The notes: generated from the sequence alone by a model not told the origin. Counted from the first letter of the stretch, positions 8,764 through 59,874 are shown. The stretch is 64,000 nucleotides of DNA from Lepidodermella squamata (GCA_047495785.1 JBLDXI010000029.1:3348001-3412000); one strand, 5' to 3'. Made by a program: numbers and translations.

Positions 8764-8790
8764 CCGTGAGTCGACTGCGCATAAAAAATA

Positions 8791-32897: not shown

Positions 32898-33494
32898 TCG
32901 ATGAAAATGAGAAATGAAACGCAGTGAGCGAGAAAGAATTTTCATGTTTTTTACATGTTAAAATTGGCGCAAATAGAATAGGTGTCGGAAAACTAAACAG
33001 TGGAAGGGATCGGGAATCGGAAAGTCGAAGGCTTAAAAGATTTCCAATTTTTTGGTCCGATAATGTTCCAATAGAATTAACGCAGAATGAAAGTAATCTG
33101 AACAGAAAAACAGGAAATTTACAGGATGAATTTTCACCGGTGGAGATGAGAGAAACAATACAAGTTCTCGAAGTCAGCAGCAAAATATTTGAGAAATTTT
33201 GAAGTAAAGAGTTGCGCAACATATCAGACACTGGTTTGCTAAAATTAGCAAGTCATCCCTTGGACCAAACAAGTTCTAATTGAAAGTACGTGATGCTACT
33301 GATTTTACGCGTAAGGGAGCGTTTTATCGATAAACCTAGCCCCTTTCGATGATCTTCTTTAATGAAGTTGGTAAAGTAAATCGCATGTCAGGTTTTACTA
33401 ATATGATGAATATTTCTGTCTTCCTCATAATATTTAATGGCTTGGTCGTAGTATACACTATAATTTTGCTAGCGAAACGTTCAATATCTTGGGA

Positions 33495-35903
33495 ATGATC
33501 TTTGGAAACGCCTATTTTCACCTCCTTGTCCTTACTGGATTAGCATTTAAAAATGCCGGATCGGTTGTTTCGAAGCCATACCGGCTTTCAGTGTTTAGCT
33601 CCTTTGTCATGACGGGAGCTGAACCTTCCACGTCCCAATGCTGCATTTCGGCTACAAAGTTCGTAGTTGATAATGTCAACAATCGAACCGATATCCTGCC
33701 CGATTACCACCTCGATCTGTTTGTTGACGACGAAAAACTGACCAATTGGATGGGGCCAAGGCTTTTTATGAAGTACCTTGACAACTATTACGCAAAGCAG
33801 CCAGCGGATGGTCGGACTTACTTATCCCCTGTTATGCTAGGCCCAATGTCTGTTTGCAACAATTACGCTCTTGTGGCTAAGGCCTTTGGATTTTCAATGT
33901 TTTCCTCTGCCTGCAACGGACCTCAAATCGGTTGGAGAAGATGGCTGTATCCAAATGTTTACAGCAGCCGAAGTTCAACTGATGAGTACATGATGGCTTG
34001 GATTAAGGTGGTTAAAGAGGTCGGAAATTGGAAGCAAGTCGGAATTCTCCACAATTCGGGAAACCCTAGCGACGTGTCTTACACACTGGTCCTTGAGCGG
34101 CTTTTCGTCCAAAACGGGGTTGATGTCATATACTCAGATGTGACAAATCTTTTCTCAGAAGAGTTTGTAATTGCTGCGAAACAGAGCAGAGCTCGTATTT
34201 TCGTGATTGGTTCCTCGCAGCTATCTCCGTGCGTCAATTTTCTGTGCTGGGCGTACAAGCATGGGATGCGAGCTCCCCGTTACGCATTCATCGCAGCTTA
34301 CTTCTGCTACATCCACCCAGATACGGTTACACAGTGCCCTGTTGAACATATTATAGCAATGTTGAGGATCACTTTTTACGTTGGACTATTCACGAACCCT
34401 ATACGGCCATTGGACATTACAACTAGCTTAGGTTATACAGCACGGCAATATGACGAATCATTTTTCAGGTATGTCAACTATACAAAATGTATAGATTGGG
34501 AATATCGACTGAGCTGCCATGACTCAGCTATGGCTGGATTGATCACCTTAGATAGGACTGAAGAATTTCTGAGGCGGAATTTCAACAAAAACTTGCGAGA
34601 TATCCAAAGTGATTTGAAAATAATGCCAGAATTTGTGGGTAACACTGTCAAGAGGTCTGAGATGATTGGCGTGCTTAAAGGTTCGATGCGATACGCACAA
34701 ACTGGAGACCTAATTGGGGATGCTATTTTCATAGGACACCGCTGGTCTCAAAACATATCAAAATTTTACTACACAATGGAGAGAATCGACCAGCGAATAA
34801 CGGATCCCTTTAATTATTCGAATTTTGAGTTGAAAAGATTCCCAACCAACGACACTTTGGTTTGGTTGACAAAGTCTGGCCGGCCCCCGAAAGACCTCTC
34901 GGAAATCCAGCAGAGGAAAGTCATTTACCCTTTGAGAACTATGATTGCAGTGACTGCTATTTCCGTGGCATGTATCCTTTACCTTCTTATTTTGGCCGTT
35001 CTTATGGCAAAGAGTAAGAAGGGCAATGTAACCAAAAAATATTTCGATTATCTCAGCAATTCATTCCTATTAATTGGATGCTTGTTTATGGTTATTCAGT
35101 CGCTTTTAATGGCTATTGGAAATACTCACTTCCCAGAGGCATTGTGTAGCTGGCGGAAGGTTTTCCTTCTACTTGGCCTGGCGCTTGTAAACGGGGTGAT
35201 ATGTTTTCGAATTATTTTCTTGCCGAACTTCATTCGAAAACATGCAAAGCGCAGGAAACGTCGATCAAGGGCTATTAGGCTCAGGATGTATGTCTTGAAG
35301 AGACCTGTTGAGGAGACTAAGTCCTCAACTCTAGTTACTGAACCAAAACGTTATCGTTTTACTTCTTTACTCTGCTGTGCCAGATCGCCCAAGACTGAGG
35401 GAACTTCAACGACAAATCATTCGACGGGAGATCAAAAAACTGTATTAGGAACAATAGTTTTACTTTCAATTACTCTTCTCTGTGTGCTCGCTTGGTCAAT
35501 TTTGCACCCTGTCAAGCTGATATCACGAATTTCGCCGCCACAGTTTGACGACGAGATGGATACTTATTTCGAAATTCGTGGTGAATTTTGCTATTCACCT
35601 TTTCAAATTTACTGGATAGCAACATTTCTTGTCATTCACGTTTTCCTTCTAATTATTGGATGCTTTTTTGCATACGAAACACGTCACTCGAAGGTGGGCA
35701 AGGCGCTTGTGATGCACGTCAGATTGGCCAGGTTGTCTGTTTTGAACGCTACAACTATGGTTTTGGCTACAATTCTGCTTGTGTTTTCGGTCCCTGACGC
35801 GGGAGTCTACCTTCAGGCTACTGCGTTTAGTATTTGCTGTTTGATTTATGCCGTGAGCTCCGCGACCATTTCTTTATTTACAATTTTGAAGTATCGTCCG
35901 TAA
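33495..35903 (+). CDS. Class C GPCR, GABA-B-type, intronless; copy 2
   Basis: Intact ORF with the same architecture; first ATG at 33495. Confidence 0.88.
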   Translation: MIFGNAYFHLLVLTGLAFKNAGSVVSKPYRLSVFSSFVMTGAEPSTSQCCISATKFVVDNVNNRTDILPDYHLDLFVDDEKLTNWMGPRLFMKYLDNYYAKQPADGRTYLSPVMLGPMSVCNNYALVAKAFGFSMFSSACNGPQIGWRRWLYPNVYSSRSSTDEYMMAWIKVVKEVGNWKQVGILHNSGNPSDVSYTLVLERLFVQNGVDVIYSDVTNLFSEEFVIAAKQSRARIFVIGSSQLSPCVNFLCWAYKHGMRAPRYAFIAAYFCYIHPDTVTQCPVEHIIAMLRITFYVGLFTNPIRPLDITTSLGYTARQYDESFFRYVNYTKCIDWEYRLSCHDSAMAGLITLDRTEEFLRRNFNKNLRDIQSDLKIMPEFVGNTVKRSEMIGVLKGSMRYAQTGDLIGDAIFIGHRWSQNISKFYYTMERIDQRITDPFNYSNFELKRFPTNDTLVWLTKSGRPPKDLSEIQQRKVIYPLRTMIAVTAISVACILYLLILAVLMAKSKKGNVTKKYFDYLSNSFLLIGCLFMVIQSLLMAIGNTHFPEALCSWRKVFLLLGLALVNGVICFRIIFLPNFIRKHAKRRKRRSRAIRLRMYVLKRPVEETKSSTLVTEPKRYRFTSLLCCARSPKTEGTSTTNHSTGDQKTVLGTIVLLSITLLCVLAWSILHPVKLISRISPPQFDDEMDTYFEIRGEFCYSPFQIYWIATFLVIHVFLLIIGCFFAYETRHSKVGKALVMHVRLARLSVLNATTMVLATILLVFSVPDAGVYLQATAFSICCLIYAVSSATISLFTILKYRP

Positions 35904-37720: not shown

Positions 37721-40132
37721 ATGTACAATAATATCTCTGAAATGAATCTAGAAAAGGCCTTTTTTCACTTTCTTTTCCTTACTGAAATAGCCGTTAAAAA
37801 TGCCCAATCGGTTGTTTCGAAGCCTTATCGACTTTCAGTGTTTAGTTCCTTTCTCATAACAGGCGTAGAACCTTCAACATCACAGTGCTGCATAGCCGCC
37901 ACAAAATTCGTAGTTGAAAACATCAACAATCGAACAGACATACTACCAGATTATCATCTCGATTTGTTAGTCGAGGACGAAAAGTTCAACAATTGGATGG
38001 GGCCAAGGCTTTTCATGAAATATCTTGACGACTACGAGAAGCAAGCCTCAGATGGTCGGACATACTTGTCACCCGTCACGCTAGGTCCAATGTCGGTTTG
38101 CAACAATTATGCTCCTGCAGCTAAGGCGTTAGGATTTTCAATGTTTTCCACGAATTGCAACGGACCTCAAATCGTGAGGAATAGATGGCTGTATCCAAAT
38201 ATCTACAGCAGCCGAAGCTCAAGCGATGAGTACATGATTGCGTGGATTAAGGTGGTTAAAGAGATTGGGAACTGGAAGCAAGTCGGAATTCTCCACAGCT
38301 CGGCAAACCCTAATGATCTCGCTTACACCTTGGTCCTCGAGCGGCTTTTTGTTCAAAACGGGGTTGATGTCATCTATTCAGATGTGACAAATCTTTTCTC
38401 GGAAGAGTTTGTAATTGCTGCGAAGCAGAGCAGAGCTCGTATTTTCGCTATTGGGTCTGGGCAACTTCCTCTATGTGCAAGTCTGCTATGCTGGGCGTAC
38501 AAGCATGGCATGCGAGCTCCTCGATACGTTTTTATCCTATCATACTTTTGCTACATGCCCCCAGATACGGTGACCCAATGCCCTGTGGAACACATTATAG
38601 CTATGCTGAGAATAACTTTCTTCGTCGGATTTTTTACGAATCCTCTACGGCCATTGGACATTACAACTAGTCTCGGCTATACGGCCCGGCAGTATGACGA
38701 AGCATTTTTGAAGTATATGAACTATACACGATGCATAGACTGGGAGTATCGCCTCAACTGCCACGATTCAGCTATGACAGGTTTAATCGTCCTAGATAGG
38801 ACTGAAGCTTTTTTGAAGCGAAGCTTCAACAAAACCTTGCGTGATATCCAAAGTGATTTGAAAATGATGCCAGAAATGGTTGGTAAAATTGTCACTGAGT
38901 CTGAAATGTTTGGTGTGGTTCGAGGTTCCATTAGATACTCCTCACTAACTCGAGACCTAATCGGGGATCCCGTTTTTATAGGACATCGCTGGACTCAACA
39001 TGTATCGAAATTTTACTATACAATGGAAAGACTCGACCAGCGAATAACAGATCCTTTTAATTACTCGAATTTCGAGCTGAAAAGATTCCCGACAAATGAC
39101 ACTTTGGTTTGGTTGACAAAGTCTGGCCGGCCCCCGAAAGACCTCTCGGAAATCCAGCAGAGGAAAGTCATTTACCCACGGAAAACTATGATTGCAATGA
39201 CTGCTATTTCGGTGGCATGTATCCTTTACCTACTTATTTTAGTCGTCCGGATGGCGAGGAGAAAGAAGGTCAATGTAACCAAAAGATACTTCGACTATCC
39301 CAGCAATTCGCTCCTACTGATTGGATGCTTATTCTTGGTGATTCAGTCACTTCTAATGTCTCTAGGTAGTACTTACTTCCCAGAGGCATTGTGTAGCTGG
39401 CGGAAAGTTTTCCTTCTACTTGGCCTGGCGCTTGTAAACGGGGTGATATGCTTTCGAATGATTTTCTTGCCAAGCTTCATCCGCAAGCATGCGAAGCGGG
39501 TGAAACATCAATCAAGAAGTTCGAAGTTCATTATTAGTGGTACGGACGATTCAGTCCTTGTGACACAACGGAAACTTTATTGTTCCGCTTCGTCACGTTG
39601 CTGGGCAAGACCGGCCAATAAGCCTGAAGGAATTTCAGCTATAAATCTTTCGGCTGGAGATCGGAAATCTGTGATGGGATCTTTTCTATTGTTTTCCATC
39701 ACATTGTTTTGTGTATTCGCCTGGTCTTTGTTGCACCCTGTCAGGCTTATCTCGCGTGTTTCACCGCTACAGTTTGACGACAAAGAGGATACGTACTTTG
39801 AAGTTCAGGACAAATTTTGCTACTCGCCGTTTCAAATTTACTGGATAGCAACATTTCTTGTCATTCACATTTTCCTGCTAATTATCGGATGCTTTTTCGC
39901 GTATGAAACACGTCACTCGAGCGTAAACAAGAAGCTTGTCATGCACGTTAGATTAGCTAGATTGTCTGTTGCGAATGCTACGACCATGGTTTTGGCTACG
40001 ATTTTGCTAGTGCTTTCAGTCCCTGACGCAGGAGTTTACCTTCAGGTTACTGTGTTTAGTATTTGTTGCTTAATATACGCCGTCAGCTCAGCGACAATTT
40101 CACTATTTACTATTTTCGAAAGATGTACGTAA
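37721..40132 (+). CDS. Class C GPCR, GABA-B-type, intronless; copy 3
   Basis: 803-aa ORF, closest to copy 2; the true start may be 37742. Confidence 0.88.
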   Translation: MYNNISEMNLEKAFFHFLFLTEIAVKNAQSVVSKPYRLSVFSSFLITGVEPSTSQCCIAATKFVVENINNRTDILPDYHLDLLVEDEKFNNWMGPRLFMKYLDDYEKQASDGRTYLSPVTLGPMSVCNNYAPAAKALGFSMFSTNCNGPQIVRNRWLYPNIYSSRSSSDEYMIAWIKVVKEIGNWKQVGILHSSANPNDLAYTLVLERLFVQNGVDVIYSDVTNLFSEEFVIAAKQSRARIFAIGSGQLPLCASLLCWAYKHGMRAPRYVFILSYFCYMPPDTVTQCPVEHIIAMLRITFFVGFFTNPLRPLDITTSLGYTARQYDEAFLKYMNYTRCIDWEYRLNCHDSAMTGLIVLDRTEAFLKRSFNKTLRDIQSDLKMMPEMVGKIVTESEMFGVVRGSIRYSSLTRDLIGDPVFIGHRWTQHVSKFYYTMERLDQRITDPFNYSNFELKRFPTNDTLVWLTKSGRPPKDLSEIQQRKVIYPRKTMIAMTAISVACILYLLILVVRMARRKKVNVTKRYFDYPSNSLLLIGCLFLVIQSLLMSLGSTYFPEALCSWRKVFLLLGLALVNGVICFRMIFLPSFIRKHAKRVKHQSRSSKFIISGTDDSVLVTQRKLYCSASSRCWARPANKPEGISAINLSAGDRKSVMGSFLLFSITLFCVFAWSLLHPVRLISRVSPLQFDDKEDTYFEVQDKFCYSPFQIYWIATFLVIHIFLLIIGCFFAYETRHSSVNKKLVMHVRLARLSVANATTMVLATILLVLSVPDAGVYLQVTVFSICCLIYAVSSATISLFTIFERCT

Positions 40133-40497: not shown

Positions 40498-41808
40498 TTA
40501 AACTAATTGTGAGCCAAACAAAGCAATTATAGTGATTGCAACAAAACTAAAGAACTGTCCAGCTACGCCACTTGTTGTGGTAGGAATAAATGGCGTGGTT
40601 CCTTGGTCAGAAGTTGGACCAAATGCGTAGATGAAGCCATCAGAGCCCTGCGCGTAAATTACCCCGGCCGAAAACGCGTAATGACAATTGAGAAAAAATC
40701 CAGGATCAACAATACTGATAGTCGAAGCAACAGTTCCGTCATTTTTGTCGTAAATCACAAAACCAGAATACGATTGGCCGATTACATAGTCATTCAAAAC
40801 AATCGGGTTGCAAGCTGTAGGCGCGGGAGGGTCAGACGCGGCAAGGCTAATTGAGGTAATGTAATAGCCACTAGCAACGAGAAACTTCCCAAGAACAAAA
40901 TGATCACCCTTCTGGCATCTGCGGTACACAACTTCGCCATCGGTGGCATAACTGAAAAAGCTGTCGCAGATTAAGCCGTCTTCATCTGCCGTCCATTTCC
41001 AAGCTTTTTTATCGATATCAATAGCTACCATTTGAGTCTTATTCCTGGTAATTGCGATATTCCCGGTTATCATAGGCGCTTGATTTGCTGGGCTGTCTTC
41101 AAGTGGGATGTCAACACTCCACAGCTTGTTACCATTCTTCGTTACGTCGTATTCAGCGACAGCGTCGATAGTCGAGCTACTCGTCAGCCCGATCAATCGA
41201 TTATCGTTCGAAAGGGATAGGTAATAGGGCATATCGAGAGAAGCGACTCCAAATGGGGTTCTCTGCAGCCCTGTTTGAAAGTCCAGTGCGATCAATTCAC
41301 CGTTTTTCCCATCGGCTGTATAAGCGACGACTAGATCTTTCAGCCCTGTAACTGGCATTATGTCGCGAATACGACCCGGCAGTTTCTGAGACCATATGAC
41401 ACCCTCGTTCCCAGCGTCAAGGCTGATTGCGGCAAGTTGCCCGTCAAAATCTGCCAGGAACATAAGTTGATTTTCAGGCTCAATCACCTGATACGTTGCT
41501 GTCCGATTCGCCTTGATCTTGATCTGATTGATAAGAGCACCGTCTTTAGCAGCGATAATTGCCAAATCGCCGTCGCCCGTTGTAGCGTAAATTTTCTTGT
41601 TGAGGACAAAAACTCGACTAAGGCCTAGCAGGGTAGACACGGGCTTGCGAGTCCATAAAATGTCGATTTTGTTAACAGGGCCCAAGGTAAATGGCTTGAA
41701 TCCTGTATGGGCGTAATCGCCTCCCTCGTCGATCCAATCATCAACAGCCGCGTGTGCCTGGCACAGCAAAGGTATCAAGAAAATGGTAGTTGCTAGACCT
41801 AGTCTCAT
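40498..41808 (-). CDS. Secreted or GPI-anchored PQQ-like beta-propeller protein, intronless
   Basis: Signal peptide; WIDEGGDYAHTG..GP..ILW N-terminal motif; repeats such as DGQLAAISLDAG..VIW, LIALDFQTG, DGFIYAF; Thr-rich spacer and hydrophobic C-terminus. Confidence 0.75.
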   Translation of the reverse strand: MRLGLATTIFLIPLLCQAHAAVDDWIDEGGDYAHTGFKPFTLGPVNKIDILWTRKPVSTLLGLSRVFVLNKKIYATTGDGDLAIIAAKDGALINQIKIKANRTATYQVIEPENQLMFLADFDGQLAAISLDAGNEGVIWSQKLPGRIRDIMPVTGLKDLVVAYTADGKNGELIALDFQTGLQRTPFGVASLDMPYYLSLSNDNRLIGLTSSSTIDAVAEYDVTKNGNKLWSVDIPLEDSPANQAPMITGNIAITRNKTQMVAIDIDKKAWKWTADEDGLICDSFFSYATDGEVVYRRCQKGDHFVLGKFLVASGYYITSISLAASDPPAPTACNPIVLNDYVIGQSYSGFVIYDKNDGTVASTISIVDPGFFLNCHYAFSAGVIYAQGSDGFIYAFGPTSDQGTTPFIPTTTSGVAGQFFSFVAITIIALFGSQLV

Positions 41809-44780: not shown

Positions 44781-45675
44781 AAAGGCCCATAAAATAAGCC
44801 GGGAGAGTGTGAGAGATTGAGAGTGCGAAATGGGTTGAAAAGTTGTAGAAATTGTAAATGAATAAAATCTGGAGTGTCGCCTTTTCTACTTTTTCACTTT
44901 ATCATGTCGAGATTCTAGATCAGAAAAAAATCGGACTTTTAGCTTGTGAAATCCCCTCACCTTCGACCCTGTATGTATCCTAATTCACGAATTTTCAAAA
45001 TTTATCTTAATTCATGCTCAAAAAGTGAAACTAATTCCATGGCCATGAATTCATTGTACTTCGAAAAAAGATTTACGGCGGCCAAAAGTGCCATCCTACC
45101 GAATTTGTTGCGATTTCTGTGAAGATCGAAGTTACGGTAAATATCGGAATACCTAGACCGGCGGTTTCCAGTGGTTTCTGTCTCGTTCTACAGCCCAGCT
45201 TCATAGAACAGCATAAATCGGCAAAATAGGGAATGGGCAGGATTACAACCTCGATCGGAACCTCGAATCAACAGTCAATCTTACAGGAAAGTGTTTCTGA
45301 ATTCTACTGAATTCTACACGTTGGTCAGCAATACTAGATCGAAGCCGACGACACTCGTTCCCATCCTCTTAGCTAAAATCGAAAAGTTATATTCCTCAGA
45401 ATGGCGATCAAAAAGTCATCAAAGTGAAATTACGTCCTTCCGTTCGTCCTTCCCGTCGTGGTTAAATTTGATTTACGTGTGATATTTGATATAAAGCAAC
45501 CAAGATTTTGGCAATATTTAAACTTATCTCCTCCGCTTACGTTTATTACCCGACAAGCCAAACGTGTTTAATTTGCATATTTTCGCGTAACCCGTGCAAA
45601 ATTGATAGTATTCAATTACAAGAGGCGCCAGGAGAAGAAGTTATAATTATGCTTAGTTTGTTCAAAACCATCGAA

Positions 45676-48022
45676 ATGATATTTCTCGCAACGCTAGCTC
45701 ACCTATTGCTTCTCAATGAAGCATCAAACGGCCAGCAGGCAATTCCTAAGCCATACCGTCTATCAGTGTATAGCTCTTTCATGATGACTGGGCTTGAGCC
45801 TTCGACCTCGCAATGCTGCGTCTCTGCTACAAAATACGTTGTAGATAATGTGAATAGCCGGTCGGACATTCTACCCGACTATCACCTCGATCTTTCAATC
45901 GACGACGAAAAGCTCAATGGATGGATGGGGCCGAGGCTTTTCATGAAATACCTGGAAAACTACGAAAAGCAAGCAGCGGATGGCCGGACCTATCTATCTC
46001 CAGTTATGCTAGGCCCGATGGGGGTTTGTAACAACTTCGCTTTAGCCGCTAGGACATTGGGATTCACAATGTTTTCGTCGGGTTGTAGCGGCTCGCAAAT
46101 CTCGTGGAAAAGATGGTTATACCCGAATGTCTTCAGCATCCGTAGTCCAGGCGATGAGTACGCGATGGCGTGGATTAAGGTGGTTAAAGAGGTCGGGAAA
46201 TGGAAACAAATCGGAATCCTCCACGGCTCAGCGAACCCCAGCGATCTCGCTTCAACTTTACTCCTCGAAAGACTCTTCGTCCAGCATGGTGTTGATGTGA
46301 TCCACTCAGATGTAGCGAACGGGTACACCGAGGATTTTGTAATCGCTGCCAAGAAAAGTAAAGCCCGAGTTTTCATCATTGGAGCTTCGCAACTAGGGTC
46401 ATGTATTAACTTACTACTAGAATTACTCTCTACGTTGGATTTTTCACAAACCCAGCCAGGCCGATGGATGTACAAACAAGTTTAGGCTACACAGCTCGAC
46501 AATACGATGAGGCCTTTCTGAGATACGTCAACTATACAAAATGCTTAGATTGGGAATTCCGACTCAACTGCCACGATTCTGCTATGACTGGATTGATCGC
46601 CCTAAATAGGACTGAAACATATTTGAGGCAAAATTTCAACAAAACCATTCGGGATTTCAAAAACGATCCAGCTTTTATCACGCGTTTAATTGGAGCCAGT
46701 GTTACCGAGTCTGAGATGATTGGGGTAATCCGGGGCCCAATAAGGTATTCGAGCTCACAAGACCTTATCGGCGATGCTGTATTCGTGGCACATCGCTGGT
46801 CTCAGAATTTAACAAAATTTTATTACAAGCTAGAGAGAGTCGATCCGTCAATAATCTCGTACTACAACTACTCGAACTTCGAATTGAAAAGATTCCCCTC
46901 AAATGACACTTTGATTTGGCTGACGAAGTCTGGCAGACCTCCGAAAGATTTATCTGAGATCCACATAAGAACGATCATCTATCCGAAGAGAGCTATGGTA
47001 GCAGTCTCGGTGATATCAGGAATCTGCGCCCTTTATCTACTAATACTCGGCATGCTTCTGATCAACAGGAATCTTAAGGCGGTGAACTGTTACTTCGATT
47101 CGCGGAACAACATGATTCTGTTAGCTGGGTGTATTTTTATGGTAATTCAGTCGCTATTAATGGCTCTTGGTAATACTTACTTCCAAGAGGAATTATGTAA
47201 CTGGCGGAAGGTTTTCCTAATGCTTGGCCTGGCTCTTGTAAATGGGGTGCTATGCTTCCGAATGATTTTCTTGCCAAGTTTCATTCGACAACATGCAAAT
47301 AACTTGAAGTATCAATCAAGCGGGGCGAGACTATCGATTTTCAGAGCTGATACCGCGATGCAACCTGTTACTAGGACGAATTCGTTCGCGCCTCTCACTA
47401 AGACTAATTCCTTAGCCCCACTTGTCAAGACGAATTCGTTAGCTCCTCTTGCGAAAACTCCAAGTTTACGTACAAATTCAGCATTAAGGAGGCTCAGTTC
47501 AATCATACCTGAGGGGATCATGAACATCATCAAACTGCAAGAGAGCCAGAAAGTTCAATATGGAACTTCTTTAATCTTCGTCATTTCACTCATTGGCGTG
47601 ATCGTTTGGTCTTGTGCGCATCCCGTCCAGCTAATCACGCGCGTTTCGCCGCTACAGTTCGACGAGGAGGAGGATTCGTATTTTGAGATTCGAGACGAAT
47701 TCTGCTACTCGCCGTATCAAATCTATTGGATAGCTGCGTACCTTGTCATACACATTTTCCTGCTAATTATCGGGTGTATTTTCGCCTACGAAACACGTAA
47801 AGCTGATGTTAACAAGGAGTTTGAGATGCACGTTAGATTAGCTAGATTGTCTGTTGTTAATGCTACTACCATGGTTTTGGCGACGATTTTGCTGGTGTTC
47901 TCGGTTCCAGGAGCTGGGGTATACTTGCAAGTAACAGTTTTCTGTTTCTCCGCCTAATCTATGCTGTAAGCTCTGCGACCATTTCGCTTTATCCTGTATT
48001 CAAAAAATGTGAGAGTGTTTAG
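45676..48022 (+). pseudogene. Class C GPCR copy 4, disrupted
   Basis: A frameshifting deletion of about 39 codons near 46418 removes CWAYKHGM...IIAML. A second 1-nt deletion near 47951 leaves the TM7 end (LIYAVSSATISLYPVFKKCESV*) in another frame, ending at 48022. Confidence 0.85.
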
Positions 48023-48369
48023 CCATTCGAAGCGGCAGTATTAATTATTAATATTCATACAGCAAATTATTCATATTGGAAACTGATTGAGTGTCTTGCG
48101 ATTTAATTTATTTGATTGGAAAAATGAACTGGCGAGTAAACTCAGTTTTTCTCCTCCGACGTGCTACGAGGGCGGTAATTTGTCTAGATTTAGCGAATAT
48201 ATATATGCCTAATCCAAGTGCCAAAATATCAGGTTACGTTAGGTAATCTCAATATCTCTAGCTAATCAGAAGGACTGACAAATTACGAAACATGTAAAAG
48301 ACTCGATTTCACAATCATCCAAAGTCAGTTCGTTATCTTTTGCCAAATCATAAAATCGAGTTTCTAGAC

Positions 48370-50709
48370 ATGCGGCGTGCTGCATTTTTGTTTCAAGTTT
48401 TACTGGCTCTATTCGAAACTTTGAACGGCCGAGCAGCTGTTTTAAAGCCGTATCGACTATCAGTGTACAGTTCGTTTCTCATAACAGGTGCGGAACCTTC
48501 AACCTCAGAGTGCTGCATAGCCGCCACTAAATTTGTAGTTGAACACATCAACAATCGAACTGACATTCTACCGGATTACACTCTCGATTTGTTTATCGAT
48601 GACGAAAAGGTCAATAATTGGATGGGGCCAAGGCTTTTCATGAAATACCTTGACAACTACGAGAAACAAGCCGCGGATGGTCAGACCTACTTGTCACCAG
48701 TTATGCTAGGTCCGATGTCGGTTTGCAACAACTTCGCCCTAGCTGCTAGAATATCAGGATTCTCCATGTTTTCAACACTGTGCAACAGCCCTCAAATTGC
48801 ATGGAAGAGGTCACTTTACCCAAATGTTTTCAGCAGCCGAAGTCCGGCCGATGAATACGCATCTGCTTGGGTGATGGTCGTAAAGACGATAGGACGCTGG
48901 AAGCAAATCGGAATGCTTCACAACTCAGCTAATCCTAACGACATAGCTTCCACACTACCCCTTGAACGTTTCTTTGTTGAGCATGGAGTCGATGTAATCT
49001 ATTCCGATGTAACGATCCTTTACTCTGACGATTACGTAATCGCTGCGAAGCAAAGCAAAGCTCGAATTTTCGTCGTTGGCTCATCGCAACTCGCGTCATG
49101 TGTTGCGTTGCTGTGTTTGGCTTACAAGCATGGGATGCGAGCTCCTCATTACGTTTTCATTGTCAATTTCTACTGCCACTTCCAACCTGAATCTGTCACC
49201 CAATGCCCATTCGAGCATATCATCGCAATGTTGAGAGCAACTTTTTACGTCGGTACTTTCACGAATCCCTTGAGGCCATTAGACATGAAAACAAGCTTGG
49301 GATACACAGCTCGGCAATATGAAGAAAGTTTTTTCAAGTATGTAAATTATACTCGTTGCTTTGATTGGGAGTTTCGGCTCAGTTGCCACGATTCTGCTAT
49401 GACTGGATTGATCGCCCTAAATAGGACTGAAACTTATCTGCGGCAAAATTTCAACAAAAACATTCGTGATTTTAAGAATAATCCGGAATTATTCACTCAT
49501 ATTGTCGGCAACAGCGCAATTGAGCCTGAAATGGCGGGGGTGACTAGAGGTCCAATAAGGTATTCGAAATCCCGGGACATAATTGGGGATACGGTCTTCA
49601 TAGCACAACGCTGGTCGCAAAATTTATTGAAACTATACTACACGATGGAAAGAATCGACCCAAAGATAACCTTGCCAACAAATTACTCAAATTATGATTT
49701 GAAGCGATTCCCGACAAATGATACGCTGATCTGGTTGACCAAGTCAGGCCGGCCCCCGAAAGATCTATCAGAAATCCAGCAAAGGGTGGTTGTCTACCCG
49801 GTGAAAACTATGATTGTAGCCATAGTGATCTCAGGAATTTGTGTAGTTTATCTCCTTCTTTTGGCCGCCCTTTCGCTAAAGAGGAAATTATCCCGGCAAT
49901 CTTCCTGTTACTTTGATTATCTTAACAACGCAATCCTCCTTATTGGATGTCTATTCATGTGTGTCCAGTCAGTCTTAATGGTTGTTGGTATGAATTATTT
50001 CCCTGCTGAGTTGTGTAACTGGAGGAAGGTTTTCCTAATGCTTGGTCTAGCTCTAATCAATGGGGTTTTGTGCTTCCGAATGATATTTCTGCCAAGTTTC
50101 ATCCGCCATCACGAAAATGGCAAAAATTCTCAGAAAAACGGTATGAAGAAAGATGTTCGGCCATCATTTCGCTCGAATTCAGCACTTCACGGCAGAATTT
50201 CAGTGATAAACGGGACACTTTCTGGAAAGTCAGCTGGAGAGAAAAATGTCTTCTATGGCACATTGTTCATCTTTATATTGACGCTCGCTGGCTTGATCGT
50301 TTGGTCCGTTATACACCCAGTTCGGCTGTTATCACGTGTTTCTTCCCTTCAGTTCGATGACGAGGAGGATACGTATTTCGAAATTCGTGACGAGCTATGC
50401 TACTCGCCTTATCAAATCTACTGGACAGCCGCGTATTTGGTCATCCATGTGTTCCTTCTAATCATCGGATGCATTTTCGCGTATGAAACACGCCATTCTA
50501 AAGTCGTCCCGGAGTTTCAGATGCATGTTAGATTAGCTAGGTTGTCTGTTGTAAATGCTGCTACCATTGCTATGGCAGCCATTTTGCTGGTCTTTTCGTT
50601 ACCAGGAGCCGGGGTCTATCTTCAGATTTCTGTTTTAACGTTCTGCTGTTTGATTTATGCCACTAGCTCTGCGTCTATCGTCTCATTCCCGGTTTTCAAG
50701 GTTAAGTAG
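48370..50709 (+). CDS. Class C GPCR, GABA-B-type, intronless; copy 5
   Basis: Intact ORF with the same architecture; first ATG at 48370. Confidence 0.88.
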   Translation: MRRAAFLFQVLLALFETLNGRAAVLKPYRLSVYSSFLITGAEPSTSECCIAATKFVVEHINNRTDILPDYTLDLFIDDEKVNNWMGPRLFMKYLDNYEKQAADGQTYLSPVMLGPMSVCNNFALAARISGFSMFSTLCNSPQIAWKRSLYPNVFSSRSPADEYASAWVMVVKTIGRWKQIGMLHNSANPNDIASTLPLERFFVEHGVDVIYSDVTILYSDDYVIAAKQSKARIFVVGSSQLASCVALLCLAYKHGMRAPHYVFIVNFYCHFQPESVTQCPFEHIIAMLRATFYVGTFTNPLRPLDMKTSLGYTARQYEESFFKYVNYTRCFDWEFRLSCHDSAMTGLIALNRTETYLRQNFNKNIRDFKNNPELFTHIVGNSAIEPEMAGVTRGPIRYSKSRDIIGDTVFIAQRWSQNLLKLYYTMERIDPKITLPTNYSNYDLKRFPTNDTLIWLTKSGRPPKDLSEIQQRVVVYPVKTMIVAIVISGICVVYLLLLAALSLKRKLSRQSSCYFDYLNNAILLIGCLFMCVQSVLMVVGMNYFPAELCNWRKVFLMLGLALINGVLCFRMIFLPSFIRHHENGKNSQKNGMKKDVRPSFRSNSALHGRISVINGTLSGKSAGEKNVFYGTLFIFILTLAGLIVWSVIHPVRLLSRVSSLQFDDEEDTYFEIRDELCYSPYQIYWTAAYLVIHVFLLIIGCIFAYETRHSKVVPEFQMHVRLARLSVVNAATIAMAAILLVFSLPGAGVYLQISVLTFCCLIYATSSASIVSFPVFKVK

Positions 50710-51185
50710 TTGAAGATTAGCTCAGATTTATTGTAATCGCCATTTTTTACAAGTACACTACCAGGTTGCTAATGAAAATTAAAAATATGATATTAACAAA
50801 TGAACAAGTTTGCACATCGTGAGATTTTTATGCCACTTTCAAGGTCAACGAATCAAGAGTCGAACTCTATCAAAAAGAATTGGAACGCAAATTGAGCGAA
50901 ACTGAAAATGTTTGTGTCTGTTGTTGAGCTAATCAAAACTGGGAAGCAGTGTAAAAGATAGGAGTTTTTCAGATAATTAATGAAACAGCCAAACGATGTA
51001 AAAATTGATAAGAGCAATCTACGCTTACATTAGCAGAATGCACAATGAATAATATTGAAAAAAACAGTGAATCATCTTTATTATCCCAAACACTATAAGT
51101 CACCGAAACTTTTCTATCATAATTCATTCTCTTCAGTCTAACAATTTCAAAATTCGATAAGCTGAGTAAAATTCTAAATTCTAAA

Positions 51186-52513
51186 ATGGCTCCCCTGTTA
51201 CCTGCTCAAACTGGTTAGAGTTTTTCACAAGCCGTCGATCCTTTTCTCAATAAATTGATGTTTTCAGGCTCTGCTGTCGCAGATGGAGATGGCAATAAAG
51301 ATTATGTAATTTGCGATGTTGAAGGTTGTGGCAAGAAAAGCGATTCTTTTGGAAGCTCAACGATCTCTTCTCTGCCGAAGCAAATCTATTCTAGCGCAGC
51401 CGTTACCATGGTAAGTCTTAAATTTCATCTGAAGTAGTGCAATCTTCTACATTTTTCTGCCGATTCAGAATCACAGGAATCAAGGACTAAGCGAGGAGAA
51501 AAGAATCGGTATCCAAAATCAATTGATCCTGATTTTGCATGCTCATAAGTGTGAAAAACGAAATGCCATTGCAAAGTCGATAGCAGCAAGTTTTGCTGGC
51601 ACTGCAACAAACCAGACTTTTCCGGACTGTAGAATCTCTCATTGTCGACTAATGAAAGACGTTATCAGCCACCTGAAAGGCTGCAGGGATGATAAGTATT
51701 GCACCTGTAAGTTTAAGCTTTCGATTTGGTTTCGAATATTACATATTACCTAAGATTGAATCGATTTTAGACAAAAGCTGCTTGTCGACGCGGCAAATAA
51801 TTAAACATTGGCAGTTGTGCAGGGACGAGGAGTGTCCGGTGTGTGCGGAAGTTCGGGCGCTGAGTCTCTTGCGGAAGCCTGTTTTCGATTCGAAAGTTTT
51901 CCGAAAAACATCTTGTCATAACGACCCTGGAGGCTCTGGCACCGTTATTCCCATTCAAGCTAGTACATCAACTTGGCAGAAAGAATTCGGCACTGAAGCT
52001 AGGCAGGCTGCTCTCAATCAATTCATGCAAGAATTAAGGGTGAACAGTGGGGGCTACAGTGACTTGGAGGCTTTGCGCAAGTTTGCCGTTCAAACCGAAG
52101 CTGAAATTTTCACCCGATCTGATAAATCTGAGCAGTACTTTTTTTACTGGCTGAGAAGCTCTACACTGCCTCGAAAGAACTCTTGCATACTGGAGGAAAT
52201 GGTAAGTGTTGAAGACATTTTTGTAAACACTTTTACATGTTTTGTTTCTTACTCCTTAAAGCGGAAAATATAAATGGTGAGACTTCTCAATGCCCGATTT
52301 GTTACTTGGACATCGTAAAACTCGGTTGCAGTTCGAGGCGATTGATTTGTGGACATGGTAAATTTGAATTTGCATTTCTTCACCTCATTTCCTTATATCG
52401 ATGTTTATCATCTAGCTTATCATATGGCATGCATCAACCGCTGGCTGAGAGGGAGTGACAATTGCCCAACTTGTAGAGCTATTGTACAGTCGCACTCAAC
52501 AAGTAAACTGTAG
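51186..52513 (+). CDS. CBP/p300-derived TAZ zinc finger + KIX domain + RING-H2 protein (one apparent 1-nt frameshift in T7 at 52139-52145)
   Basis: Exons 51186-51213, 51268-51410, 51469-51706, 51771-52201, 52262-52357, 52416-52513. TAZ1-like IQNQLILILHAHKC..HCRLMKDVISHLKGC..C..CLSTRQIIKHWQLCRDEECPVC; KIX-like WQKEF..EAEIFTRSDKSEQYF(F)LLAEKLY..KEL; RING-H2 CPIC..CGH.YH..C..W....CPTCR. Confidence 0.8.
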
Positions 52514-52686
52514 TTCTTGCGCGTGCTTGAAATCTTGAAATTCTAGCAATAATTTGAATATCATCATTGTGATTCTATTATTATTCAATATGAACTGATT
52601 GAAAACATGTTTGCAGTCGGAAATAAATTACCCAAAATTATGAGTTTTCAATTTGACATTCATTCATTCATATACCATAAAAGGGT

Positions 52687-53139
52687 TCACATCATTCGTA
52701 CGAACGATGCAATGGCATGTTTAATTTCCTTGCTCTAGTTCAGTTTTACAAAAGCCCCCGTCGGGTTACCTTCATCTAGCCCCTACTCTCGGGGGTGTGG
52801 GGGCGAAGCCCCCAAAAGAAGAAAGGGGGCAAGGGCCTGACAAGGGAAAACAACGTGAAATTTGAATTCCACGAATCCCTGCCAAATCCCACCAATCTTC
52901 AGCTAAAAAATTGGCCAGTTCAAAACATCTCACATCATTCGTATCAACGATATGATGGCATAACTAATGCCAAACCTTAATCCTGTCAAAAAATGCTCAC
53001 ATCATTCGTAAGTATGATGCGATGGCTTACCCGAATGCCGTACTTTGGCTCTCTCCTGAAAATACACCGCGGACTGAAGCCGAAACATGGGCCAGTTGGA
53101 AAAATATCACATCCTTCCTATGAACAATATGACGGTATG
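52687..53139. repeat. Four degenerate copies of a ~33-bp motif TCACATCATTCGTA..ACGAT..GATGGC
   Basis: Copies start near 52687, 52930, 52997 and 53107 at irregular spacing; a GGGGGCGAAGCCCCC hairpin lies at ~52800-52814. Confidence 0.6.
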
Positions 53140-53993
53140 TAATTTAGGTTAACTCAGGCAATCGTATGAGAACCTTATGAGTTCGCCAAGTAGAATAGTC
53201 GTAACTCTGGCAGTCGTAGGAGTGCCCAAGGCGTTGACTTGAAACATATCTGGCTAAGGTAGATCGCAAATCGCAAGCATCTGATACGTGTCTCAATCGA
53301 ATTTGAATTATGAAAAATCAGCAATTAGAAGACACGCGCTTCTCAATACGGAATTTCTCAGATTGAATAAGTAACTGGAACATTTATACTGATAGCAGTG
53401 CTATTTGTCGCAAGATTCGATACAGGTAAATGCGAGCAACATTCGGGCCTCTAGACCACGGTAATCGAATTCGCCGACCTTGATTTACCCACTCCTATAA
53501 CGACAGGCAAAATAACATTTCTGAAAGCACTCATAAGACACTTTGGGGTTTCCCGTCTTTTGATGAGGATGTAAGTCTCCTAGATTTTTGAATTTTGCAC
53601 AATTTTTACCATAGCCGAGAAAATCACACAATAGAGCAATCAAATTACCCGCCCAATGAGAAAAACCTTTCGGCCCGATAATTTTTATTTCCAAAATGAA
53701 AATATTCGCCGAAAAATCCGTTCGCGTTCAATTGTTCTAATTACGGGCTCTATTGTGAGATTTTCCCGGCCTCGGTAAAAAGTGGCTGCGCTATGTGTAA
53801 ATTCAGAATTCTGAAGAAAAGCTGCGTTGAAACTTATTGGAATCCAAGAATCGTCCCTCTTCAAGCCAACACACATTTTGTGCTGGAAAATAAAGAAACT
53901 TCACCAAACTCACCCCACTTTTCACTTGTTAAGGGCAAATCATAATATTATCAAAAATAATTTCCATTCACATAATTGCACGCCGGTAGAATA

Positions 53994-54507: not shown

Positions 54508-57021
54508 ATGAAACTTTTAGCGATTGTCTATTTTCAACTGATAACATGCGGTTTAGCCCTGAAACCGTATCGCCTCAACGTTTTGAAAATGATCCCATTC
54601 ACAGGTAGTTGATCTAAGTAAACAAATCACCCCAAACCTCAATTTCTCATTTGATACAGGAGCCGAGCCCAAGAAAGGGCTAAGCTGCCGTGATGGAGCA
54701 AGCGTGGCGTTCGATTTCGCGAACAGTCGCCCGGACATTCTGCCAGACTATCACATTGAAGCTCAGTACGAGGACGAATTCGTCGGAAACACTGCTGCGA
54801 GAGCTACGATTTCATACGCCAGAAGTTTCGAAGCTTCGAACCCGCGTAACTCATCGAATCTAGCCTCGGGTTACCAATCACCCATAATACTAGGGCCGCA
54901 TTACACTACAGGGTGCAAGGCGGTGGGACCCCTGCTACCTCACATTAAATCCGTAGGGGTTAGTACGTACTGCGGGGCTCCGTTTCTCTCCGATCACAGT
55001 TTGTACCCAAATTTATACCTCATGATCCAAACAAATCGCTTTACCGCTTTCGTTTACATTCGATTCCTGCGTGAAGTTGGAAAATGGAACCGTTTCGCTT
55101 TAATAACCAACGCGGCAAGTGTGAATGATTATCTAACAGCGATATTCGTTCAAAAAGCCGCGTTGGAAAATGGATTTTCCGTACCCTGGTTCGAAATAGT
55201 CACTGACATAACCGATGAAGCCGTTTCGAGTCTGAAATCCGGAGATTTTCGGGTTATAGTCATGTTTTCGGCCTCTGACCGTTTCACATGGCGACTTTTG
55301 TGCCAAACCTACAAAGTTGGTATTACAGGACCTAAGTACGCCCTTGTTGTCACCTACATCACCTACAGCGACCCATACGCCCTACCAGACGAGCCATTTC
55401 CTGGCTGTAAACGTTCCATGATCATCGAACAGTTGAAGATAACGTTCTGGTTGAGTTTTGTCCTTACCCCAGAAGACATGAAACTAACCTCCCAGCTCGG
55501 TTATAACGTAGCTGAGTTCGAAGCTATATTAGACGAGAAAACCAACAAATCGCGACCTGCCGATTACCAAAACCGATTTCTATGCCATGACACCGCTTTG
55601 AAGGGAATCTATGCGCTGGACGATGCTGAGAAACGTTTGAAGGCAATGAATCTATCGCTGCGAGACTTTTCGAAATACCCGGACTTGGTCATGCAAGTCG
55701 CGAATATCTCAGTCCAAACGACCCAGGTTAACGGTTTGAGAGTTGGCCCGATGAGGTACGGGAAGACTTTGATGCAAGAAACCGATGCGGCCATTATTGG
55801 CTACTGGAATCCAACGAGGGGCCTGGAGTACATGGGGATGATAAAACAAATCCCTGATACCCCGGAATTCGTCTACTCCAGCTATTCAATCCAAATGTTG
55901 AGACCCATAGTTTGGCTAACGAGAAACGGCCTACCCCCGAAGGATCAAATCACAGCTAGGAACATCATCGCCGAAGTCTCATCCAGTACTTTGATCGCAG
56001 TCTCATTTTTCGCTGGAATCATCGGTTTCGTTCAAGTCATCTTGCTAGCAATCACTCTGTGGATTCGTGAAAAGGAACGATGTATCAAACGCTTCTCAGA
56101 CAGTAAGATTCTCGGCCTATTGGGCAGCCTGATAATCGATGCTTCATCAATTTTGTTCTGCATCGAGACAAACCCATCGCCCTATCTACTTTGGGTCCTT
56201 CGATTAGTCACGATAGTCGTGGGACTATCCATTACCCACGGCGTATTTATTCTCAGACCTACAACAATCAATCGTTGGTTTAGTAGTAGAACGCACCGTG
56301 CAATTGGCCCATCGAAATCGAGGAAAAGCGTTTACGGTGGTAAGGAAGATACAGCAAATAGCCAGCAGTTGAGTTTCAACGACTTGAAACCTCCGGAAGA
56401 AACGCAGAGGAAGTCGATCATCAACTCCCCACTCCCGGAAGCGGATGTCTCGCGATTGAAGACACCGTCACGTTTGAGTACGGTGGGCAATAATTTGAAG
56501 CAGTCGAAAAGTGTTGCGCTGATCCCGGATGAAAGCTGGCGCCGATTTGATACTTACACCTGTATCGGAACTGTGATATTCACGCTTTTCAACGCAGTTC
56601 TCTTCTTCATATGGCTGGTTGCTGATCCTTTGATTTGCGAACTTGTCGAGGCGGGGTCTTACTACATCGAACAGGAAGATACACTGGTAGAAGTACTTAA
56701 TTCCAGCTGCCGGGGTAAATCTATGTTGGCCTGGATGTTGTCTTTCGTCTTCATTCACATAGCTTTTCTGTTCTTCGGAGTGTACAAGTCGTACTACCTT
56801 GGCAGGCAAAATGGGAGATTCTCGTCCCGGAGTTCGCAATGTTGCGCTTTGGAATTGCTAATGCCACAACGTTACTTTGCGGAATTCTGTTGATTGTCAT
56901 CATTATTCGAAATTTGATCGGTCAGCAAATCGCTGTGGCGGTTGGGTTGCTTTTAACATCTGCACTCACGACCCTCAGCTGGTACATTCAGTTCGTCCGG
57001 GAAAAGATGTGGCGATCTTGA
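54508..57021 (+). CDS. Divergent class C GPCR (GABA-B-type) with one intron and an apparent 1-nt frameshift before TM6
   Basis: Exon 1 54508-54604 (MKLLAIVYFQLITCGLALKPYRL..), intron 54605-54659. TM6-TM7 (EILVPEFAMLRFGIANATT...) lie in the -1 frame from about 56800-56815. Pseudogene or consensus error. Confidence 0.75.
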
Positions 57022-57720: not shown

Positions 57721-59874
57721 TTAGTCTCTACAGAAAGGAACAATCCATTTGTCATCACCAATATGCTCACAGATCAGCAGTACTGAAGCCGCCACTTTTG
57801 TGCATTTCGGATAGTCGCTCAGTACGAATTCCTTTTTACCATCACACAACTTCGGCAGTGCCATAGGATCGCTATTGCGCGCTATTGTGTCAATAAATTG
57901 ACCACTAGCTATCAAGACTGACGGTCCAGTTTCATTACGAATCCCGCAACCACCGATTAGGTAAGACGCATCTTTAACTGTAAGACCTTGATCCAAGGCC
58001 TTCGGATTTGGGAGAAGTTGCGTCTTAGAAATATCTCCGCCAATCGACAGGTAGAAAACCATCGATAGCTGAAATTTCATATCTAAAATAGTTTGAAGGC
58101 AGTCAACTTGAGTTTTCGCTTCCAGCGCAGTAACTCCCCAAGTTTCGACCAAAGGCACAAATTCAGCTGGGTGGATACAAAATATTCTCCGGCTAAAGTA
58201 AGGCCGATATAGATTCTCGACATTGAACGCTTCCCGGCCGGAATTATGACCAAGCCAAACGATTAGAATGGCAGTTTTAGGTTTTATCAGAGATTGAATC
58301 GTAGGGTCAGAAACATTTGGGCATTGCTTATTGGCAGCCTCGCCAGATTTGAGGTAAGATGTTGGGGCAGTGTTTTTCGAGGTCTGATTCGATGATTTAA
58401 TCAAAGGCTGTTCGTAAGGGTAGAACTCAAGCAGGGTTTTCTCATTCTCACGGCAGTCCAGCCGTTCACTACGCTGCGGGAATTCGTATCCAACCCTCCT
58501 TAAATCTTCCAGCCAGGCTATCGAGATCTTTGGGTCATAATCCTCGAGCATGGACTTTGATTTAGCCAGGTCTTTGAACAGCTGTCGGTAGCATTGCATA
58601 AAGCTTAATTCAACCGGCTTGCATTGCCAATTTGATAGAAACTTGATGAGTTTGCTCGATCGGCCGTGGAAATCAACTTCAGCGCTTAGATCCATCGGAT
58701 TCTCGCTTGGAGTTCGAATCGCATTAGGAGGTGTGAATCCTATTCTAGCGCCGGAGAGCCATAACAAAGGTTGATTGATATACGAGCGAAGAATATCAGC
58801 CTCTCGATCATTCTTAACATTACAAAACAATTTCATCATTCATCTTTCATAACTAGTTATCGAAACTTACAAGTTTATCGAATATCGGGAAGAAAAGAGC
58901 AGGGAAAGCGTCGTGGGTGAACAGCGTGTTCTGTGAGTTGGAAAGCGCGAAGAAATTCTCAGGCACAGCAACCTTTGTTGATTCATCAAACGAGTAAGTT
59001 TGTCCTGGGTCGAATTTCTTTCTTAGAACTGCAAGAACCCCGTCAAGATCAACATCTCCTTCCGTCAAACCTTGCACCCAAGACGGTGGCCTCGAATCGC
59101 AAAGCTTGTATCGCCTCATCGCAGGCTTCGCTATCTCTTGAAGTGGGAAACCACGTGGCCAGAGACTAGACTGGCCGAAATGAGGTAGATGATTGATGAC
59201 AGGGAGCGACTCGCCCTGTTTCTGAGCATCGAAGTACAGCATTTTGACTTGCTTCGACCGAGCGCCATTCTTCTCATGGCCTGTAACATCAAGCAGGGTT
59301 TGAAGATTGTCAACGACCTTTGTATTGTTATCCGTGTCGTAAATCAATTTCGCACCATGTTGAATGGCGAAGAGATAAGCCGAATTTTTAATCGAGGCGT
59401 AGCTTTTCGTACTGTTATGGTTTAAGCTTTTGAAACCGAGAGTCCGGGCCTCTTCGAAGGAAAGAAGACGAATGTGGTCGGGTGGGGACCATCCCTCTGG
59501 TTTGTCACCGGCTACGAGTAACCGCCAATTAGTTGATTTTGACAGCTCAACTTGATGCCTCAAATGTTCTGCCGAACACTGGAAATTAAAAACACTGCTT
59601 AAAATCGGAGATTTCCTCAAAATCCAACCTTCGAACAAACTACGACGATCCAACGTTCGGAAAGCTTTTCATTCGGCAGGGGTTTGAGAAATTGGCTTGA
59701 GTTGCTGATGTAACTGTCGTTGATTTCATTGAAGGTTTCGAGAACTGAGATTGCTGGAGGGCCCTCCGATAAGTCTTTGTTGTAACTTGTGATGTAGTGG
59801 AGAAAAAGTAAGATAACTAGTAGGTTTGGCAGTGCGATCAAGAGTTTTTTCACCAGTTGATTCTTTCGTCGCAT
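57721..59874 (-). CDS. STELLO-like (DUF288) Golgi glycosyltransferase, 3 exons
   Basis: Type II TM; RWIVV, WRLLVAGDKP, SYASIKNSAYLFAIQHGAKLIYDTD, WPRGFPL, NSQNTLF, DILRSY..QPLLW; introns 59628-59579 and 58870-58813 join the three ORFs. Confidence 0.85.

Follow-up and report, generated by a model that had tools for sequence, protein, structure and literature searches.

A compact gene on the plus strand of Lepidodermella squamata DNA, at 51186-52513 of the 64,000-nucleotide stretch that we analysed (GCA_047495785.1 JBLDXI010000029.1:3348001-3412000, hereafter the window), brings together TAZ1 and KIX domains of the kind found in the coactivators CBP and p300 and a C-terminal RING-H2 finger. Our favoured reading, which we would give a probability of roughly 55%, is that it belongs to a multi-copy, lineage-restricted family of small RING-H2 ligases that would be directed at activation domains, and that this particular copy carries, as assembled, a run of seven T (7T) where an intact protein calls for eight. 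The parts of this reading differ in strength: we regard membership of a TAZ1-KIX-RING family as very probable indeed, while the proposed mechanism deserves noticeably more caution, and the state of the window copy turns on a single base.

The gene model comes from a reading of the sequence of 50600-53200 together with a script for splice sites and phases, and it comprises six exons (Table 1) that run from an ATG at 51186 to a stop codon at 52511-52513 and are separated by five introns of 54-64 nt, every one of them GT..AG. The locus is bounded by neighbouring genes, of which the upstream one ends at 50709 and the downstream one starts at 54704. When each exon piece was used in a tblastn search, no further copy of the family was found within the window, and Rfam gave no match across the whole of it. 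The Pfam, PDB and database searches with the gene itself used single exons or pieces; at that level, exon 2 has no significant Pfam domain. Just downstream of the gene, at 52672-53139, a 48-nt motif also occurs four times, the copies being 243, 67 and 110 nt apart, with the core TCACATCATTCGTA..ACGAT..ATGGCAT and an internal CATCAT/ATGATG palindrome.

Table 1. Coordinates of the gene, of the receptor-like array around it and of two related loci on metagenomic contigs
Feature	Position	Strand	Description
Exon 1	51186..51213	+	ATG + 9 codons (MAPLLPAQT), ends in phase 1; GT donor
Exon 2	51268..51410	+	N-terminal region, 47 codons, frame from phase script
Exon 3	51469..51706	+	Initial two-thirds of TAZ1 with zinc sites 1 and 2; loop following helix 1 carries 13 inserted residues
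Exon 4	51771..52201	+	Last zinc site of TAZ1, linker of ~38 residues, KIX; frame break inside
T7 homopolymer	52139..52145	+	One-base frame break within KIX helix 3
Exon 5	52262..52357	+	First half of RING-H2 (CPIC...C-G-H), entered in phase 1
Exon 6	52416..52513	+	Second half of RING-H2 (H-x2-C...CPTCR), short tail, stop codon
Candidate polyadenylation signal AATAAA	52622..52627	+	109 nt past the stop codon; from sequence reading alone
Receptor-like ORFs	30594-32897, 33489-35903, 37721-40132, 45508-47957, 48340-50709, 54704-56893	+	Tandem array
L001	ena:ERZ27333047:k141_435176 4006-4923		Intronless TAZ-KIX-RING gene, 37-39% GC
L002	ena:ERZ23486787 scaffold_15826 3928-4872		Intronless TAZ-KIX-RING gene

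The first of the three domains is the clearest. Pfam recognises zf-TAZ in exon 3 at 35.6 bits (cutoff 25), and the C-terminal third of the domain continues into exon 4, the start of which aligns with helix 4 of CBP TAZ1 in a sequence search of the PDB. In the same search the exon 3 portion matched the TAZ1 structures of p300 and CBP at E values of 4e-11 to 3e-10, as against about 0.03 for TAZ2, and all 12 His and Cys zinc ligands, which make up three HCCC sites, could be aligned. On these alignments the domain reads as TAZ1 (CH1) of CBP/p300 and not as TAZ2. The KIX domain in exon 4 is divergent, with KIX_2 found by Pfam at 30.6 bits (cutoff 25.6), a score obtained without helix 3, and with a weak hit to Med15a (E 0.62) as the sole match of exon 4 in the PDB over the KIX region. 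Its helix 3, taken in the corrected frame discussed below, reads LLAEKLYTASKEL beside LLAEKIYKIQKEL in CBP, nearly CBP-like, and retains both the Tyr and the Lys that contact the phosphoserine of pKID in the KIX-pKID complex of CBP (1KDX). The groove lined by helix 1 is another matter: in the alignment with CBP, the equivalents of Leu599 and Leu603 are both Ala and that of Lys606 is Gln, so that the known ligands of CBP cannot be assumed for this protein.

Exons 5 and 6 together spell out the ligand pattern C-x2-C-x15-C-x-H-x2-H-x2-C-x10-C-x2-C, in which eight of the eight metal ligands are present. Exon 6 on its own comes out slightly under the Pfam cutoffs, at 30.2 bits for zf-rbx1 (cutoff 31) and 26.4 bits for zf-RING_2 (cutoff 27.3), as half a domain would be expected to do. 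The residues through which a RING contacts its E2, as far as they can be read from sequence, are also retained (the Ile of CPIC, the Trp of RWL, and the Pro and linchpin Arg of CPTCR), and an alignment shows them to be conserved across the family too. Residues of this kind are typical of active RING-H2 ligases, and a profile of the family RING is closest to the RINGs of active ligases, namely Arkadia, RNF165, RNF126, RLIM and RNF38, with E values from 6e-16 to 1e-12. By such criteria the domain would be classed as a canonical RING-H2 of the Arkadia/RNF165/RNF38 type, and the protein as a putative RING-H2 ligase. With these closest relatives (Arkadia/RNF111, RNF165, also called ARK2C, RNF38 and RLIM) the gene has the Ile, the Trp and the linchpin Arg in common, but they carry other substrate-binding regions, such as SUMO-interaction motifs, and none of them has a TAZ or KIX domain. 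We also considered CBP's own RING as the source of this finger and rejected it: Pfam's RING_CBP-p300 matches P0005, a CBP-like protein, and does not match the TAZ1-KIX-RING family.

TAZ1 followed by KIX is the order in both CBP/p300 (KAT3) and the gene. Exon 4 is collinear with P0005, whose order is TAZ-KIX-bromodomain-CBP RING-PHD, over the last part of TAZ1, the linker and on into KIX (E 2e-15). CBP and p300 run to about 2,400 aa, whereas the gene would encode about 344 aa; it lacks the bromodomain, the CBP-type RING, PHD, HAT, ZZ, TAZ2 and IBiD, and it ends in a canonical RING-H2 that CBP does not have. Pfam found neither a bromodomain nor an acetyltransferase (HAT) domain in any exon, and the neighbouring genes leave no room for one between 50709 and 54704; the gene has no space for a kinase domain either. 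With no catalytic core, the gene is not a CBP/p300 orthologue. The preliminary description of this locus had proposed TAZ1-like and KIX-like domains in CBP order, a complete RING-H2 after them and no bromodomain or acetyltransferase, and on all these points it has held up; its picture of a truncated CBP that captured a RING is also a fair one, given a TAZ1-KIX segment collinear with P0005 and a RING of Arkadia/RNF38 rather than CBP type.

Is the architecture to be found elsewhere? An exhaustive HMMER search of 1.84 billion representative proteins with exon 4 returned 23 matches at E <= 1e-3. Three of them, P0002 (305 aa, E 2e-7), P0010 (309 aa, E 3e-5) and P0015 (314 aa, E 9e-5), contain TAZ, KIX and RING_2 according to Pfam, and the other matches, from insects, a bryozoan and nematodes, bear a TAZ domain or are CBP-like and have no RING-H2. 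A word search with a profile contributed P0031 and P0032 and no others, which brings the tally to five unnamed TAZ-KIX-RING clusters of about 305-320 aa, all of them from ENA metagenome assemblies. These five have the same domains in the same order as the window gene and align with it collinearly, but with an identity of only about 30-35% over exon 4; the exon pieces of the window align in order with P0002, P0010 and P0015, beginning at the first helix of TAZ and reaching the end of the RING. Among candidates 109-346 aa long, a word search found nothing at E <= 1e-3 for the stretch without stops that surrounds exon 4, since the word index is too insensitive for relatives at 30-35% identity. 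At the two metagenomic loci of Table 1, which are those of P0024 (from the P0002 cluster) and P0028 (from the P0015 cluster), the gene is a single uninterrupted ORF on an animal-like contig. Both are intronless, in contrast to the window gene with its five introns, and among their neighbours are animal genes, including Cys-loop channels and a fibrinogen/PAN protein; their uninterrupted ORFs prove independently that one protein contains all three domains.

Structure prediction gives a similar picture. An AlphaFold model of P0002, built from a family alignment of ten sequences, is of moderate confidence, with a pLDDT of 69.8 (about 80 in TAZ, 82-90 in KIX and 58-70 in the RING), and Foldseek places its parts in the PDB beside CBP/p300 TAZ1 (TM 0.74-0.81), KIX (TM 0.75-0.80, at 25-27% identity) and the RINGs of RNF165, Arkadia, RNF38 and RNF12 (TM 0.55-0.78). 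In the ESM Atlas, exon 4 matched generic truncated-CBP clusters only and the whole of P0002 had no usable match. We found no annotated protein and no paper with a TAZ1-KIX-RING architecture, our literature search having yielded reviews of CBP/p300 and unrelated work, and to that extent the earlier remark that the architecture is not known as a described family stands.

Public reads add a good deal to this. Of the two runs that we used, X2 dates from 2015 and is RNA by our guess, while X1 dates from 2024, is unspliced and is probably from the source sample; their organism labels differ, and X1 may be identical with the assembly data. X2 behaves as RNA, since GT..AG joints are seen for five of the five introns: 51212/51267, 51409/51468 and 51706/51771 for introns 1 to 3, 52201/52262 between the KIX exon and the RING exon, at a depth of 27.3, and 52357/52416 for intron 5. 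Its depth is zero in 51712-51762, the one read bin that is wholly intronic, and drops steeply in the bins made up mostly of introns 2, 4 and 5; one of its contigs extends at least to 52598. Because contigs of X2 cross the splice junction between KIX and RING, the RING exons are part of the KIX gene, and the suggestion that they might form a separate gene, for which RNA-seq across this junction had been named as the check, is contradicted.

The reads also show that the gene is one member of a multi-copy family in its genome, and the metagenomic relatives place the family in other uncultured animals as well, where the preliminary description had spoken of one gene. For the RING exon, X1 contains up to ten or more distinct variant contigs, the summed depth of which is about ten times that of a single-copy piece. 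Most related contigs are only 85-95% alike, the paralogous ones part from the window upstream of about 51307-51324, where they have loose ends, and two paralogue versions of the KIX-to-RING joint are present in X2 as well. Among the 36 best-supported differences between paralogues, 16 are synonymous and 20 non-synonymous, which should be read as a rough figure drawn from part of the differences; none of the 36 removes a metal ligand, the ligand codons being changed only synonymously, and five of the 20 non-synonymous differences cluster in 13 codons of KIX helix 1. The enrichment of synonymous differences points to moderate purifying selection together with change at the surface.

The difficulty lies in the frame. 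As an account of exon structure, the spliced gene of about 340 aa that had been described stands, with six GT..AG exons and agreeing start and stop coordinates; as an account of the protein it does not, because the six exons total 1034 nt, two more than a multiple of three, and the RING is out of frame unless there are eight T. In the frame as assembled, exon 4 ends in phase 0 and a stop follows three codons into exon 5 (RKI*), whereas the RING exons require phase 1. Ahead of the T7 run, the KIX frame reads ...SDKSEQYFF, and this part of exon 4 aligns with P0005 up to ...EQY; past the run, KIX helix 3 continues as LLAEKLYTASKELLHTGGN, in the frame that leads on into the RING. This shifted reading matches family members at the collinear place, with scores of 43-47 that none of 200 shuffles reached, and it also matches residues 332-344 of P0005 (FLAEKIYTTRKNI) and CBP itself, while the assembled frame after the run has no match to P0005 at the collinear place. 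One added T restores the spacing of CBP. A protein of about 340 aa therefore needs eight T, the assembly has seven, and the copy as assembled would be truncated ahead of the RING. The assembled frame has one similarity of its own, in that its tail YWLRSSTLPRKNSCILEE (52145-52201, +) resembles a TAZ segment of P0002 and P0031, LHLRSGECPRNDSCTMQF, with a score of 34-35 and none of 200 shuffles as high. We have treated this as chance, even though the score is above expectation, because it is non-collinear, is absent in other members and is not significant once the number of frames and targets is allowed for.

Which of the two counts is right depends on how the reads are weighed. In X2 every contig across the run has an extra base, either a T or, in paralogues, a C, and a 110-nt contig covering 52093-52201 has eight T and is otherwise identical to the window. 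In X1, two paralogue contigs carry the extra base, and a portion amounting to about 101.6 of 254 in depth has no inserted base and, at the nearby variable sites 52134 and 52170, is like the window, so X1 seems to support seven T. It is this pairing, an otherwise identical X2 contig with eight T and an X1 that seems to agree with seven, that leaves a choice between an allele and a miscall. We lean slightly towards a very recent frameshift allele of the sequenced strain; a homopolymer miscall is a serious competitor, although we would not quite give it an even chance, and slippage is very improbable. The 17 kb of intact ORFs contain one run only of seven bases or more, too few to gauge the accuracy of the assembly at such places. 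Either way, the difference between seven and eight T is a concrete and cheap test case, be it of gene birth and death in the family or of assembly accuracy.

This bears directly on the strongest of the rival accounts, for which we would lay even money: that the locus has been freshly inactivated in a birth-and-death family, so that the seven T give either a TAZ1-KIX protein without helix 3 and without the RING or a transcript removed by nonsense-mediated decay, and only other copies or alleles are functional. The seven T of the assembly, the insertion-free depth in X1 with its two matching variable sites, and a stop that comes after three codons of exon 5, before the final exon junction, are all what such a history would leave behind; broken members are common in multi-copy families, and a nearby GPCR-like gene is also split between frames. 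Against this are set the identical X2 contig with its eight T and the doubt over whether X1 and the assembly are the same data, the seven-T reading in X1 resting on depth. Any lesion would have to be very young, because the splice sites, the eight RING ligands and the downstream ORF are all intact. In the strain with seven T, the locus may yield no RING-bearing protein.

RING ligases are defined by what they bind. In the mechanism that we propose, which in our estimation falls a little below an even chance, the docking unit from the N-terminal part of CBP/p300, in which a short linker connects TAZ1 and KIX, would stand in for a conventional substrate-binding domain. TAZ1 and KIX would hold transcription factors by their disordered activation domains, a charged E2 of the UbcH5 kind would be recruited by the C-terminal RING of Arkadia/RNF38 type, and ubiquitin would then pass to the bound factor or to a close neighbour. 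Such a logic would be like that of MDM2 acting on the activation domain of p53, but built from the modules of a coactivator. In MDM2, an N-terminal domain binds the activation domain of a transcription factor and a C-terminal RING ubiquitinates that same factor; its binding domain has the SWIB/p53-binding fold, which is unrelated to TAZ1 or KIX and is absent from the Pfam matches of every exon of our gene, its RING is of a different subtype, and there is no homology between the two beyond the RING superfamily, making this a functional analogy only. To our knowledge, no described ligase uses the activation-domain docking modules of a coactivator as its substrate receptor.

Two known systems do connect these modules with ubiquitin. 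The N-terminal regions of CBP and p300 have been reported to have E3/E4 ubiquitin-ligase activity toward p53 (PMC6478392), and in plants the BTB-TAZ (BT) proteins serve as substrate adaptors of CUL3-RING ligases (PMC11101318, PMC8774732). The BT proteins resemble the gene in tying a TAZ zinc finger to the ubiquitin-ligase machinery, but they do so through a BTB adaptor instead of an intrinsic RING, they have no KIX, and they end in a calmodulin-binding tail; a BTB domain is absent from the Pfam matches of every exon of the gene. Since the BT proteins are plant proteins, their fusion of TAZ to a ligase arose independently.

The preliminary description had run the terms 'decoy' and 'ligase' together, and these are different mechanisms. 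As a dominant-negative decoy, the protein would chiefly compete with CBP for activation domains, and its RING would have no part beyond its own turnover or a structural one. We consider this improbable. TAZ1 and KIX are the conserved core, and other animals do have shortened CBP-like proteins that bear TAZ, in some cases together with KIX, and lack a catalytic domain; yet all the RING ligands and E2-contact residues are kept in four aligned RING-bearing groups as well as in the window copy, and ligand codons that change only synonymously are hard to square with a dispensable ligase function. It is this conservation of the RING that makes a pure decoy less likely. Least credible of all, to the point that we give it hardly any weight, is recoding, in which the seven T of the DNA are real and the intact frame is reached during expression, either because the polymerase slips in transcription or because the ribosome shifts by -1 on the U run. 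It would fit a DNA-like run with seven T and an RNA-like run with eight in otherwise identical sequence, and a -1 shift on UUU UUU U would yield exactly the conserved YFFLLAEK. But the extra base is in all of the X2 depth at the site, where slippage leaves a mixture; a run of seven T is short for a polymerase to slip on efficiently, and in the zero frame it does not form a canonical X XXY YYZ heptamer; the paralogues encode eight bases outright, some with a C inside the run; and a difference between strains is simpler, because the organism labels of X1 and X2 differ.

Returning to the ligase family, we would suggest, tentatively and at longer odds than the mechanism itself, that a set of ligases that read activation domains with coactivator modules may have arisen in animals of this lineage and grown to ten or more copies. 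Engagement of an activator could in this way be coupled to its destruction, or foreign transactivators of viral or transposon origin that hijack CBP could be intercepted, with the paralogues diversifying on the surface of KIX helix 1 for different ligands. If the family works as we infer, it would be a natural counterpart of the engineered degraders aimed at transcription factors and a second, independent solution to the job that MDM2 does for p53. It would also open a direct way into the long-standing connection of activation domains with degrons, and it would provide a naturally diversified collection of TAZ1 and KIX variants, the ligand preferences of which could be mapped.

The surroundings of the gene have features of their own. 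Six intronless ORFs of class C GPCR type, each of about 730-800 aa and all on the plus strand (Table 1), form a tandem array that extends to either side of it. Among the five ORFs scanned, those other than 33489-35903, Pfam recognised ANF_receptor in four and 7tm_3 in a broken fifth, and a word search with one of them (789 aa) gave no relative at a strict E <= 1e-10. The broken member is split between two frames, at 45508-46485 and 46464-47957 (+), and has about 40 residues fewer than its neighbour, the break being a larger lesion and not at a homopolymer; it is probably a pseudogene or a mis-assembled copy. At 8694-8783 (+), the peptides of exons 5 and 6 have a weak, RING-like match by tblastn (E 0.004 and 0.14), which may belong to an unrelated RING-finger gene. 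Finally, two ORFs on the minus strand are unusual for an animal genome, namely an intronless one at 40498-41808 that encodes a bacterial-type, PQQ_2/BamB-like beta-propeller, and one at 57721-58839 with a STELLO glycosyltransferase domain.
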